Shown piece by piece: positions 28,831-45,539 of a stretch of DNA of 64,000 nucleotides. The notes under the pieces were generated by a model. The model searched no databases, was not told where the DNA came from, and was given only the letters and a program-made list of their open reading frames with translations. The position numbers and the translations under genes are program-made. Source of the DNA: Bugula neritina (Eukaryota; Animalia; Bryozoa); assembly GCA_964035545.1 (NCBI GenBank), contig OZ037768.1, positions 8,340,741 through 8,404,740 on the forward strand. Direction: 5' to 3'. The first letter of the stretch is position 1. Every line of letters starts with the position of its first letter.

Positions 28831-31800
28831 CTATGTTGCTGAAAAGTCGTTCTTTGCTTCTTCCATACAAGGCTGTGAGACACGATTTAGAGATAGCAGA
28901 CAGTTGATCTCTTCAGAAGAGCAAGTAATATTGTCATCAATGTTTTTTGGGGGTTTGCTGCTTGTGCAGCGGTAGCCTACAGCATATGGTGAAATTTGAC
29001 TAGCTGAAGAGACTAGGGACCTACTGTCTTCATTTTCTAGATCAGCTACGGGATGCCGTGGTATCACTTCTTCATAAACTGGAATCTCAATGTTAGATGG
29101 GGGAGGTGGGGGTCGCCCCCTTGGAATTCTATTTCTTGCAGCTCTCCTGTGTAATGACAAAAAGTATTGAATGATACTAGCATAGCATTATCAAAGTTTT
29201 GCATTACTTTGATGGCCTGTTCTCTACTAAACTGAACCTCTTTACGGAGATTACTATTCATCATTATCTAAGTTCCTCTACTTCTGAATTTTACCTTTCA
29301 TTCAACTGGCACCAAATACATGTATAGTGACTAACCTTCTCTGTCTCCTCACCACTATGGCCAGCAGCACAGTAATCAGCAGTACTACTACCACGACCAA
29401 CGCAACAACTGCATATGATGTCCAGCCATCAAAAGAGAAAACAATCTTGTTTGGAGGATCTTTACTAGTTGAGTCTATAAACAGGAAAAACTTTAAAGTT
29501 ATCATCATATCTCTATCTGTTACTACTTTTGTCTGTAAACACTGTTGCTAAGGGTTAGACTTTAGACCATGCTTTGCAGATTAGATTTATATTTCAAGCA
29601 CCGCTTGTTCCTACTCAATGATTATACAAGTTCTTCAACATTACCAGCTGTGGTGCATACTTTAAACAGCTCGTAATGCTATAGTAATAAATCAAAAATT
29701 AAGTAGAAAATGCAGCATTACACATTGTGAATAGTGAATAAAGGAAAGTTGCCAGCCTTCAAAATGAAATGAGAAAAAGAGAAAAATATATACGATTGTT
29801 GATGTGGGGAGCAGATAGATGTCCACACGTATAATTTAACAACATGGTCGCATTGAAGCAACTGTAATGCTTGCCATGTAGTGTATCGAATAGGTAAACA
29901 GACCTGACTTACCACTCACATCCTCTAATATAATGTCTCTTATAATAATATACAACTTCAAACTTAAGAAAAATAATACAATAGCAGGATCTACTGGAGT
30001 GTATTTTATGTGATTGACTCAATCTACACAGTGTTTCACACTTCAACATTGTTCACTTTAAATATTTACCTGGTTCAACAATTGGCCTTACTCCTGGTAG
30101 TACAGGAGGAGATGTTTTCGTCACAGAATATGAAGTTGTTGTTGAGGCTTCAGTTGGCACTGTATACTGAGGGATAACTTCTACAAACATCTACTCAATA
30201 TCTCAAACTGCATACACCACATTATTCATTACAATGTACAAAATTGCATTGCATGTTAGTTATAAAAGGCCAATTTAAACTTGCACCTAATTTGCAAAAC
30301 TTAATATATGAATTATTAGGCTACTTTATAGTCGATACCCACTACCTCAATTTTTTAGGCGATTCTTTCAAATGCAAACTCATAAAACTAGTTTGTAAAA
30401 ATATAATATGAGTAATATGCCTATATAAACACAATCTGATAGTATTGTAAAGAGATAATAGCTTGGAATATGTTATACATATCATTGGCAGATAAAAAGT
30501 ATTTTGTTACTGCAGCTTCAATAACGTTAATACAAGGGTATAAAGCTCAGTATAACACAAGCTAATAAAAATAACATATTTTTTCAATCTGATAAAACAC
30601 TCTTATTTGAAGAATGATTCCTACAGCTAGATTGGTGAACAAAAAAAATAGTAAATAAGGATGTGCCACATGAACTTATTAGTGGTCTAAAGAGTTTCTT
30701 GGAGCAGCCATGGTCTAAGGGTTAGAGCGGTTGCCCAGTAAAACATAAGGTCACTGGTTCGAGCTGGACAAAGGCTATTGGTGATGTTAGGAAGAGCACC
30801 CAGTCATAACTGCTTTTGTGTCACATACGAATAAGTTCGTAGCCCGCTTTAACAAAAACCCTTTACATCAGGGGGATGGCGACTATAAACTTGCTTTTTT
30901 TAAAAGAGTTACTTGGAACTTTTTACAGCTAGGATACAGCTTATTGTGATATCTATATTATTATGTTATCAGCTTTAGCAACATATGTTTGCTATAGCAT
31001 ATAATTGTATTGGTAGTAGCCTGTTAGTATGAGTTGTATAATATATTACATACCTTTCAAAGTTAGCACCTCCACGCAGTCCTGGTATCCAACATATAGC
31101 TGATCTCTTCTAGTAGATAGAGATATGCTGTGCAGTTTTTCACCACTACAACTTCCTCCTAAGCTGGGATTCCAAACATTATCTCCTTGTAAGTTGAGCA
31201 AGTTGAGCTGATATATACCCTCATAGTCCACAATTAAGAGCAAGTTCTCTGTAGACAAAATATAGAGATATTCAATATCTCTATCAAACTCCTCTAAAGT
31301 CATTATTGTGATAGGATTTGTGTTATCATTCACTCGAAGTAGGTGAGATCCTACTGATACTAACATATTATAGTTTTTTAAATTTACAGCTAAACTCTTG
31401 ACATTGTTCAACAAATGGTCATCTCGAATAATTGTTTCTATTACCACACTTTGATGGTCTGCTAATACTCTCAGCAACCGAATAGCGTTGTTTTTGGAGT
31501 CGGTTAAATAGTATGTGCCATTCTTGTAGGGAGACACTATTGCATTCGGCTCGTTAAATCTAGCTTCTGTAGCTTGACCATCACTAAACCCAGAGAATGT
31601 ACATTTACCAGCAAACAAACTTGTTGAGTTTGTTAATCTGTTGACCCATCGGAGGCAATGGTTTCGCTTATCAACAACTATGATATGGGTTGAGTTGAGT
31701 TGATAAAAACTTGATGTCAGATTGAACAATGCTGAGCTACCCTGGCCTTCACTGTATCCTGATCTGCCTCTTCCAACAAAAGGTTCAAGCTGCCCTCCAT

Positions 31801-32797
31801 TCTGTAAAGTACAGAGAGACTGAAAAGTTGCTACTATTAGTTGCTCTGGATTCTCAACATCTTCTTCAATATGATAGGCTGTTGATGGAAATATTGATGG
31901 AGCGTATTTCTCTGACTTTGTTACTGTCAACCTAGAGGTGCAATAGGAATAATATTCAATACATTAGGCTCTCCAGATATTCTAGTTTCATGGAGCAGCT
32001 TGGGAAAAGAAAAACAAGGCTTGGTTATAATAATTAATAACATTTATAAATCATCAACATCTGATTGTTTAATTATAATTTACAAGATTGATTTGCTTTT
32101 CTCCCACAAGTTATGTCAATCAAACTAATAATAAGATTTTAAAATAGGATATGGCATTAGTAGCGAAAACTATGATGATGCTTTACAAGACAAAGTTACA
32201 ATTATTTTCCCAACAGCAGTCATTCAAAGTCACACGGTAAAGAAAAACTGATGGAAAATGAATATGATATTGTAACCATGGGTAAAAGCACATTTACGGC
32301 ATAGTCTATTTATCATTTCCTTCTTTATATTGAGATTGAAAATCTTTGAAGACAAAGTTATATACAATCATCTTTCTTTAAAGACATATTGATGTTATAC
32401 TGGAATTGCATAGAAGGCAATATTTATACATATATGTTGCCAATTTTATATCTAAAGCAAAAGCTTTTTGCTATCACAACGTAAGCTTTTTCTCTAGGCA
32501 GAAATGCTTAAACTAGTTTTAAGATTAGTTCTCCATTAAATTACATTCTCAATATGAAAGATCTGTCTCTAGTTTATTGCTTCAATTCCGTGGATCCCAA
32601 TTATTCTGAATAGAAATGAATAAATTACAGTGAGTGCAAGCACAACTTTAATAAAGCTAGCATGATATGTCACTCATGCAACTACCTAGCTGCAGATAAG
32701 GTAATGTTACTGTAAAAGAGTATACATTAACTTACCCATGAGATACGGTTTTTAGTAAAGAAATGGTTAAAAGAAGTTGAGAAACTGCTTTAAGCAT
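28831..32797 (-). CDS. NHL-repeat beta-propeller type I receptor-like protein, paralog A, ~501 aa
   Basis: Exons: 32797-32736 (signal peptide MLKAVSQLLLTISLLKTVSHG), 31931-31054 (NHL: [38 protein letters not shown]), 30180-30070 (S/T/P stalk), 29474-29336 (TM YAVVALVVVVVLLITVLLAIVV-RRQRR), 29146-28831 (tail). Intron phases 2,1,1,2. Confidence 0.88.
30701..30900 (+). mobile_element. tRNA-derived SINE (family 1), copy 2, in intron 2 of NHL paralog A
   Basis: Same head, body and tail as the other copies; flanked by aaagagtttcttgga / aaagagttacttgga (TSD-like). Confidence 0.85.
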
Positions 32798-44300: not shown

Positions 44301-45539
44301 TCATGTGTGAGTTGTTGTCAAACTGGCAGTCGGATTGCTCTTCATTTGCCGATCTGCACTGCAGAATATCTACTGTATTGCTGACAGTGTCCATCACCAG
44401 CACCCTACTAAAGTCTTTGTTCTTTTCCAGAAGAAAGTACATGTTTTTAGTTGCTCGAGAAATTGACGAAATAAGTTCATATTGAAAAGGATTTGTGATG
44501 CTTTCGTAATTATTCATTTCTGTAAATGAAAACTCTGTAAATTCAGAGTTTATTGTATTTATTTCAGCAACACCAAAACTTCCTGTTACATAAATATGAA
44601 ACAAGCTATTACTGGTAGCTATACCTAGTGGAGAAAGCACCCTCTCACTACTTTGGATTGAAGTGTTGACATATACCAGAGTATGATCAGGAGAAGTCGT
44701 CAAAATGCGTATGGCATCATTGAGTGTATCTGTTACATAATATTTATTGCTATGGAGCTCTTTTACAATGCTGGTTGGACTTGAAAATCTTGCTTCTAAG
44801 GATTCTCCATCTTGAAAGCTTGCTTCTTCGCACCCGCCAGCAAAAGGAATGGTAGACTTAGTCAGGACGTTGGTAAGATGCAGGCAGTGTAAAGTTTTAT
44901 CAACAACAATTATATGTGTCTCATTTATTTGATAGAATCCATAAAATTTGAAATCACTAATTTTTGTTGTGAAACTTGTACTTCTGCCGCCAATCAGGGT
45001 TTGTGGAATTCTGTTCTCGCCTATCAGATGTAAGCCAATGTTTGAAGAGGTGATAAACTGATTAGAGTTTCCCAAATACTCTTCAATGTGATAAATAACC
45101 GTTGCATCTGCTTGACTAAATGTGTGTATTAGTTCAACTTCAACTGAGCTAAAATATACATTATTTTACATCTAAGCGTTGAATACCTAGTTAATGTCAG
45201 CAACAGTATTAAGAATTAAAATATGGTCCATCTTTAAATTAATCCATCAAAAAGTAGTAAAATACAATTATTGTTATTAACCAATTAGCTGATGGCTATT
45301 GAATAGCCAGCTACTTGTGATGGCAATAGAAACTATTCTTGAGTCTGGACAGATTAAATCAACTAATGATTGCTTAAATATTTGAATACATAGAAAACTA
45401 AATGCTTAGGTGATGAGAAAATTGTTTCAGATTGATAACATAATTTTTCTCAACTTGGCAATATTATAAGTTACATGATTCAAACTCACCATACTAGTGA
45501 CCACAATGAAATATAGTATGTCATCAATAAGATCATCAT
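41377..45539 (-). CDS. NHL-repeat beta-propeller type I receptor-like protein, paralog C, ~590 aa
   Basis: Exons: 45539-45490 (signal peptide [17 protein letters not shown]), 45148-44226 (NHL: [38 protein letters not shown]), 43905-43819 (stalk), 43183-43063 ([28 protein letters not shown]), 41968-41377 (Tyr-rich tail ending ETRV). Phases 2,1,1,2. Confidence 0.88.
43308..43507. repeat. Compound (TG)n/(TGCG)n microsatellite
   Basis: Directly visible. Confidence 0.98.

Follow-up and report, generated by a model that had tools for sequence, protein, structure and literature searches.

Three neighbouring genes for predicted receptors

The window analysed here is a 64,000-nucleotide stretch of the Bugula neritina genome (assembly tzBugNeri2.1). 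Sequence models confirm that it contains three real neighbouring genes, A, B and C, encoding predicted cell-surface receptors (Table 1). As the first-pass annotation had proposed, all three lie on the minus strand and follow one five-exon plan: they translate without internal stops into proteins of 590 aa (A), 554 aa (B) and 501 aa (C), every intron has GT-AG borders, and intron phases are 2,1,1,2 in each gene. The encoded order is a signal peptide, a six-bladed NHL propeller held in a single exon, an S/T/P stalk, a TM helix and a non-catalytic tail. By hydropathy, the signal peptide, the single TM helix and the basic stop-transfer residues are type I single-pass features, pointing to a surface location and to this orientation. 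A TM helix also appeared, at 363-393, in a single-sequence fold of the public protein P0163, although that model was poor (pLDDT 42). P0163 was the one protein searched or folded at full length; A, B and C were run against databases as separate exons, their spliced models serving for reading-frame checks and pairwise comparisons.

Table 1. Features of genes A, B and C (positions in the window)
Feature	Positions	Strand	Evidence or remark
Gene A exon 1, predicted signal peptide (phase 2)	45490..45539	-	Hydrophobic N-terminus, GTGAGT donor; sequence only
Gene A exon 2, NHL six-bladed propeller (phase 1)	44226..45148	-	E 7e-76 to family profile
Gene A exon 3, S/T/P stalk	43819..43905	-	Predicted donor GTTAGA
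Gene A exon 4, TM helix	43063..43183	-	KD19 3.38
Gene A exon 5, 196-aa tail	41377..41968	-	Single copy genome-wide
Gene B exon 1, signal peptide	37266..37324	-	Model and ortholog comparison
Gene B exon 2, NHL propeller, blades 1-3 homogenised with gene C	35421..36277	-	Model and ortholog
Gene B exon 3, stalk	34926..35078	-	Model and ortholog comparison
Gene B exon 4, TM helix	34073..34211	-	Model and ortholog comparison
Gene B exon 5, 151-aa tail, 10 Tyr	33465..33921	-	Ortholog comparison, motif counts
Gene C exon 1, signal peptide	32736..32797	-	Ortholog comparison; matches EB796_015633
Gene C exon 2, NHL propeller (model folded)	31054..31931	-	AlphaFold, fold search
Conversion tract, gene C, about propeller residues 13-126	31554..31895	-	Gene B partner 35903-36244
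Gene C exon 3, stalk	30070..30180	-	Model and ortholog comparison
Gene C exon 4, TM helix	29336..29474	-	Ortholog comparison; sole close relative is gene D on C9
Gene C exon 5, 105-aa tail	28831..29146	-	Ortholog comparison; polyproline, YEE and YAVGY motifs common to paralog D

The models of B and C were compared with a second B. neritina assembly, GCA_010799875.2, where the orthologous exons keep all acceptors and donors and encode intact proteins of 548 and 495 aa, the lengths of that assembly's own gene calls. The two genes adjoin in tandem there as well. Artefacts and chance open reading frames were rejected as explanations. Because gene A was left without an ortholog comparison (no ortholog was found in two JGI metagenome scans), its exon 1 and its exon-3 donor are read from the DNA of this window alone.

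The tails had been described as Tyr-rich, which holds for A (10 Tyr in 196 aa) and B (10 in 151 aa) and fails for C (3 in 105 aa). Seven of the A tyrosines are followed by D/E, and this tail carries two YxxM and two YxN motifs and a class I PDZ-type ending, ETRV. Tyr contexts were non-random. An excess of acidic residues at +1 in A gave p=0.0001, that of SH2-type motifs in B p=0.0015 and a pooled test p=0.006; more than one statistic was tried, and these values are uncorrected. All 13 tail tyrosines of B and C are kept in the orthologs in GCA_010799875.2; for B alone this conservation is not significant, tail identity being about 85%. Paralog D, whose propeller dS exceeds 1, still has the motifs of the gene C tail listed in Table 1. 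No canonical ITAM (Yxx[IL]x6-9Yxx[IL]) occurs in the three tails, where two relaxed pairs were seen in B, and no conserved ITIM ([ILVS]xYxx[IVL]), the single match in B becoming PxYEPV in its ortholog.

The propeller and its family

The proposed NHL beta-propeller fold was borne out for exon 2 of gene C, where an AlphaFold model (pLDDT 86.6, pTM 0.88, 24 strands) and a fold search agree. The closest structures were SOQ1 (Z 29.7) and NHLRC2 (Z 29.6), which were also the closest propellers in a sequence profile search of the PDB (E 1e-32 and 9e-30, respectively). PF01436 is over its cut-off in B and C, and the propeller of A matches the family profile and NHL clusters of the Atlas at 0.96. A Cys pair on one hairpin, invariant in 22 of 22 paralogs and missing from the aligned stretch of SOQ1, would fit a disulfide and an extracellular location.

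By sequence and structure together, the nearest propellers are those of SOQ1/NHLRC2 and of bacterial long-loop NHL proteins. However, SOQ1 and NHLRC2 carry a thioredoxin-like domain beside the propeller, are chloroplast-lumenal or cytosolic, and have no stalk, TM helix or Tyr tail. TRIM-NHL identity can be rejected, since TRIM-NHL proteins have RING, B-box and coiled coil before a cytosolic NHL domain, whereas here a signal-peptide exon lies upstream and a TM helix downstream. Teneurins share an extracellular NHL propeller (fold match Z 22-24), but are type II multidomain proteins of about 2800 aa encoded by few conserved genes. In Mycobacterium PknD, too, the sensor domain (Z 25.5) is a six-bladed NHL propeller outside the cell, carried by a receptor that crosses the membrane once; PknD, however, is bacterial, has the opposite orientation and carries a catalytic kinase inside.

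An exon-2 profile search of the B. neritina genome revealed at least ~145 NHL genes of the single-exon type (about 150), which form a family of mixed architectures arranged in tandem arrays on several chromosomes. Few copies are broken, with stops in 5 of 131 profile matches. The suggestion that type I receptors with an NHL propeller and a non-catalytic Tyr tail form a family specific to this lineage is supported, and the family has far more than three genes. Ephrin_rec_like exons showed no association with the NHL arrays, one gene at C2:23.96-23.98 Mb perhaps excepted. Among 1.8 billion proteins, profile matches were dominated by long multi-repeat NHL proteins. Our literature search found nothing relevant on bryozoan, Bugula or rotifer NHL expansions, and no published description of the family. 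The further claim that the architecture itself had no described counterpart was too strong, as trypanosome FLA1/FLA2/FLA3 and FLA1BP have the same domain order: signal peptide, N-glycosylated extracellular NHL-repeat domain, one TM helix and cytoplasmic tail (PMC10675206). These differ in being few, in serving flagellar attachment in a protist, and in having tails of 16-45 aa with no Tyr tails reported (PMC10675206). No FLA proteins were among our database search matches, and we regard them as an analogue only.

Conservation, gene conversion and polymorphism

Between lineages, the propellers of B and C are under purifying selection (dN/dS 0.37 and 0.27, respectively), with values of 0-0.08 in the TM helices and 0.22-0.44 in the tails. 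One-to-one orthology and gene order are maintained across about 9% neutral divergence. The ectodomains had been described as strongly diverged, which is not uniformly so: B and C share 86% nucleotide identity over 342 nt spanning blades 1-3, and site patterns and dS show that these blades are common to both genes through old gene conversion.

Across 22 paralogs, top-centre positions of the propeller are among the most variable columns (up to 3.3-3.5 bits vs a strand mean of 2.0), whereas the top-face loops as a whole are no more variable than the bottom loops (2.30 vs 2.38 bits), nor are they between orthologs (p=0.14).

Divergence between the two assemblies (UK-US) is flat: over 23 kb, a span that also takes in three unrelated genes, it stays at 6-11% per kb and has no peak at the receptors. 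Among US haplotypes and samples, which are few and partly non-independent, the B-C region differs by 0-0.7%. In these samples, deep alleles at B and C were rejected. The haplotypes of gene D are 1.5% apart vs 3-6% in the flanks. A third version of paralog D, about 9% from the other versions, was also seen.

Candidate roles of the receptors

The reading we prefer, tentatively and at somewhat under even chances, is that the three proteins act as contact receptors, each paralog with its own specificity, and signal through SH2, SH3 and PDZ motifs. As single-pass type I surface receptors, they would use a glycosylated S/T/P stalk to lift the NHL propeller clear of the membrane and offer its top face to a partner. 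That partner would be fixed for each paralog and would most likely be a protein of the matrix or of an adjoining cell. The result would be a code of cell contacts, comparable with FLA1/FLA1BP and with the NHL domain of teneurins. Partner binding would cluster the receptors, and a Src-type kinase may then phosphorylate the tail tyrosines, with SH2 proteins recruited by YxxM, YxN and YEE motifs, SH3/WW proteins by the polyproline of C and D, and a PDZ scaffold by A. Diversity would lie between paralogs and not between alleles, and would have been generated through tandem duplications, the shuffling of exons and, now and then, gene conversion. The conservation of architecture and splice sites of B and C in a second lineage supports this reading. 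So do the propeller fold, the invariant Cys pair, the variable top-centre positions with no common catalytic set, the low dN/dS between lineages, the tail tyrosines retained in B and C, the tail motifs still present in D and the non-random Tyr contexts. NHL-mediated adhesion also has precedent: it has been proposed for FLA1/FLA1BP (PMC10675206), and PMC11058771 describes the teneurin NHL domain as helping to set cell-cell binding specificity. Against it, innate immune repertoires just as typically consist of large tandem families with dN/dS of 0.3-0.5, the tyrosine conservation of B is not significant by itself, and the top-face loops do not exceed the bottom loops in variability.

Such a germline-encoded pattern-recognition repertoire, in which the propellers bind surface ligands of microbes or symbionts (e.g. 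Ca. Endobugula sertula) and the Tyr tail signals, is the strongest competitor, although a less probable one. Six-bladed propellers serve as lectins and sensors elsewhere, as in tachylectins and hemomucin. The large tandem family of mixed architectures, the variable top-centre residues, the gene conversion and the PknD sensor among the fold matches all fit this repertoire; the top face without excess replacement changes, the scarcity of broken copies, and the orthology and gene order kept between lineages argue against it.

With about 150 predicted surface proteins that share one propeller exon, the family is among the most obvious candidates for recognition between bryozoan zooids, colonies or their bryostatin symbiont, and exact gene models make the idea testable. 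More speculatively, and with a rather low probability, the whole family may serve bryozoans as their means of recognition, be it immune, of symbionts or of self and non-self. It would then be a counterpart of Hydractinia Alr without Ig domains, in which half-propeller conversion swaps create new specificities; some members, such as A or D, the latter with a deep third version, could act as polymorphic allodeterminants. The A/B/C trio is a conserved, well-defined entry point more than the polymorphic part of such a system.

It is very unlikely that the genes are allorecognition determinants in the manner of Alr1/Alr2, with highly polymorphic ectodomains and allele-specific homophilic binding. 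They do resemble the Alr family (PMC9546547): both are clusters of type I receptors, found in colonial animals, whose domains each occupy one exon and whose Tyr-bearing tails diverge. The third version of D may be added in favour. However, Alr proteins have Ig/Fn3 ectodomains and ITAM/ITIM motifs and form one genomic complex, whereas A, B and C have an NHL propeller with no Alr-type Ig-like ectodomain, and the Bugula family occupies several chromosomes. Tens to hundreds of alleles are known for Alr1/Alr2 (PMC9546547), in contrast to the low polymorphism of B and C in our few US samples. The first-pass annotation had offered an immune or allorecognition role and had named low polymorphism, together with housekeeping-like expression, among the grounds for rejecting it; low polymorphism is what B and C display, beside dN/dS below 0.5, flat UK-US divergence, no canonical ITAM and an ITIM match lost in the B ortholog, and the haplotypes of D are likewise close. 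The conservation of B and C and their low variation make it unlikely that these two genes serve as markers of self and non-self.

Finally, membrane-bound ecto-enzymes (a PAL-like lyase, or a hydrolase of the SMP-30, paraoxonase or strictosidine-synthase type) are the least probable reading and were rejected. In their favour, PAL (Z 26.5) has this fold, as do lactonases (Z about 26), the Atlas lists a PAL-like cluster of arthropods as a weak neighbour (0.81), and one blade-1 His is kept in 18 of 22 paralogs. Against them, these paralogs have no shared set of catalytic residues that we could find, PAL is absent from the PDB matches of the sequence profile, the channel-mouth columns that would correspond to the PAL His triad or the SMP-30 Glu/Asn/Asp metal ligands are variable, and about 150 copies bearing signalling tails fit an enzyme poorly.

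Gene structure and predicted cytoplasmic tails

The three tandem NHL-propeller receptor genes A, B and C were rebuilt from sequence, with GT-AG introns throughout and phases 2,1,1,2 in each gene, which bears out the shared five-exon plan claimed in the first-pass annotation. The order of B and C, and their adjacency to the same DUF1907 gene, are kept in GCA_010799875.2, a draft from two Virginia colonies typed as S that gives the best public protein matches. All splice sites of the two orthologs are preserved and their proteins intact, and the AUGUSTUS calls of that assembly, made using transcriptome hints, equal the rebuilt orthologs in length. 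This cross-assembly comparison, which covers B and C (gene A is outside the public contig), strongly supports their splice models.

Coordinates of the receptor genes, neighbouring features of the window and related loci on other chromosomes
Feature	Position	Strand	Remarks
Gene A	45539-45490, 45148-44226, 43905-43819, 43183-43063, 41968-41377	minus	590 aa
Gene B	37324-37266, 36277-35421, 35078-34926, 34211-34073, 33921-33465	minus	554 aa
Gene C	32797-32736, 31931-31054, 30180-30070, 29474-29336, 29146-28831	minus	501 aa
PSI-domain gene	311-13715	plus	PSI domain exon plus two long exons, Thr-rich and mucin-like, at 311-754 and 8426-9184; likely to encode a plexin-domain-containing surface protein
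Short element with inverted matches	21141-21347		probably a MITE-like repeat; copy in intron 1 of gene D
DUF1907 (C11orf54-like) gene	about 24000-28030	minus	directly downstream of gene C; two calls in Virginia draft
Class I fructose-bisphosphate aldolase exons	49078-52455, 58499-58756	plus	exon order suggests two tandem copies
Minisatellite	about 51830-52180		among aldolase exons
Amino acid permease (SLC7-type) exon	62952-63221	plus
Gene D, paralog of B and C	C9:8.53 Mb
L006-L011, L013, L017-L019, L021, L022, L024, L028	C2:24.67-24.85 Mb, C7:13.5-14.7 Mb		as in most members, small cysteine modules (HYR-like by eye, plus conserved C-D...L-C exon) follow the NHL exon in place of a stalk
L016	C9:7.93 Mb		NHL exon, then Sushi/CCP-like exon, then TM exon

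All three proteins begin with a hydrophobic segment; each carries 4-6 N-glycosylation sequons, a stalk of 40-47% S/T/P, and one TM helix with basic residues directly after it. The three tails lack both a catalytic domain and a canonical ITAM, in agreement with their earlier description as non-catalytic; the label Tyr-rich suits A (10 Tyr in 196 aa) and B (10 in 151) but not C, whose 105 residues hold three Tyr and a polyproline run. The A tail contains two YxxM and two YxN motifs, and its C-terminus is a PDZ-type motif of class I. Seven of its ten Tyr have D/E next (shuffling, p=0.0001) and the B tail shows eight SH2-type contexts (p=0.0015), both p-values being uncorrected, with four statistics tried. 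All ten Tyr of B are kept in its ortholog, where the sole ITIM match is lost. SH2, SH3 and PDZ motif assignments follow established consensus, and the tail Tyr may be phosphorylated.

A propeller family across the genome

Exon 2 is predicted to fold as a six-bladed propeller (pLDDT 86.6, pTM 0.88), confirming the proposed NHL domain. Its nearest solved relatives are SOQ1 and NHLRC2, both by fold (Z 29.7 and 29.6) and by sequence (E 1e-32 and 9e-30); its Atlas structural neighbours are bacterial NHL proteins (TM 0.82-0.86), which is no evidence for transfer. Two Cys flanking one hairpin are invariant across 22 paralogs, which would fit a disulfide within a domain exposed outside the cell.

The genome-wide count proposed in the first-pass annotation gave 136 matches with a single-exon query and 131 with a 22-sequence profile. 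Counted by hand, the two sets together cover at least about 149 places, of which two or three may be unrelated NHL exons. The arrays are found on C2, C7 and C8. At the loci looked at, a single exon encodes the propeller, mostly with a candidate phase-2 acceptor and phase-1 donor. The short flanks of 27 other members are mixed in architecture: 17 carry small cysteine modules that look HYR-like by eye, five have a TM exon (in one case preceded by a Sushi-like exon), one has a proline-rich stalk, and four show nothing clear. Propeller, stalk and Tyr tail thus form one subtype of the family. In the tree, B, C and D form a supported clade (97/98); A, on a long branch, joins it with weaker support (94/90). 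The A tail occurs once in the genome. For the TM and tail of C the sole match is gene D, whose tail retains its end along with the polyproline, YEE and YAVGY motifs. A literature search found no paper on any bryozoan NHL receptor family; the family is real and undescribed. A 168-aa NHL fragment (P0003, Logan SRR25569775), possibly from another bryozoan, carries the family Cys pair at 34-37% identity to B and C.

Mosaic propellers and lineage divergence

Along 342 nt, corresponding to about residues 13-126, B and C are 86% identical in nucleotides; past this tract their divergence is saturated. The strong ectodomain divergence reported earlier is thus not uniform for this pair. Inside the tract, dS is 0.26-0.29 for B-C versus 0.68 for C-D; outside, C pairs with D, both in the remaining propeller and in the TM exon. 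At about residue 129 the informative sites change from 36 BC/10 CD to 28 BC/125 CD (maximum chi-square 51.6, reached in 0 of 2000 permutations). Faster evolution of the second half of B could contribute to this site pattern; it does not account for the low first-half dS. Between UK and Virginia copies, 24 sites are fixed by paralog and none shared by lineage, and the homogenising event is therefore older than the UK-US split.

The UK reference (tzBugNeri2.1, GCA_964035545.1) comes from a Plymouth specimen (PMC11480708). It differs from the Virginia draft by 6-11% per kb, evenly over 23 kb including DUF1907 and two more genes, without a peak on B or C, and by about 9% substitutions throughout positions 15000-38000. 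Around D, some 18 kb including two unrelated genes are similarly diverged (84-85% identity with gaps). The divergence of the two regions suggests that the UK reference and the Virginia type S draft represent separate cryptic lineages within the B. neritina complex. On a JGI contig, D has a third version that differs by about 9% from the UK copy and from each of the Virginia haplotypes, while gene C of that sample is 99.95% identical to Virginia; this version may stem from a mixed sample that includes a third cryptic type, or may be a paralog or a deep allele.

The UK-Virginia dN/dS comparison gave 0.37 (B), 0.27 (C) and 0.32-0.37 (D) for the propellers, near zero for TM, 0.22-0.44 for tails and 0.7-1.0 for stalks.

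Candidate roles

Top-face centre positions rank among the most variable columns across paralogs, and, the Cys pair apart, conservation of polar residues is largely confined to structural Asp and Arg belonging to the NHL motif, which argues for differing ligands and against a common active site. Tentatively, the most likely reading is that A, B and C are paralog-specific contact receptors. The top face, which by propeller geometry should point away from the membrane since the last strand exits at the bottom face, would bind a fixed partner; receptor clustering would lead to tail phosphorylation, and the phosphorylated tail would recruit adaptors. The same order of domains is already known from trypanosome FLA1/FLA1BP (PMC10675206), and teneurins offer a precedent for an NHL domain that helps to set binding specificity (PMC11058771).

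A pattern-recognition repertoire, possible and less probable than contact receptors, would match the family size equally well, but these genes carry no arms-race signal, and orthologs showed no replacement excess in top-face over bottom loops. Allorecognition determinants are very unlikely and fail one test that defines them. The clustered Tyr-tail layout resembles that of Hydractinia Alr, whose Alr1 and Alr2 are highly polymorphic, with allele numbers in the tens to hundreds (PMC9546547); in contrast, the B-C region differs by only 0-0.7% among US sequences, a small and partly non-independent sample (the Virginia draft was polished with Illumina data from the same project). Together with the flat UK-Virginia divergence, these data point away, for B and C, from the self/non-self role that was among those first suggested. 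The two Virginia haplotypes of D are 1.5% apart in the gene versus 3-6% in the flanks. Membrane ecto-enzymes, which likewise fail a defining test, are slightly less probable still; other roles, such as cuticle or settlement proteins, make up the rest. The Atlas feature neighbours of the full-length public C protein, in rotifer, plant and arthropod clusters (0.80-0.88), are leads only.
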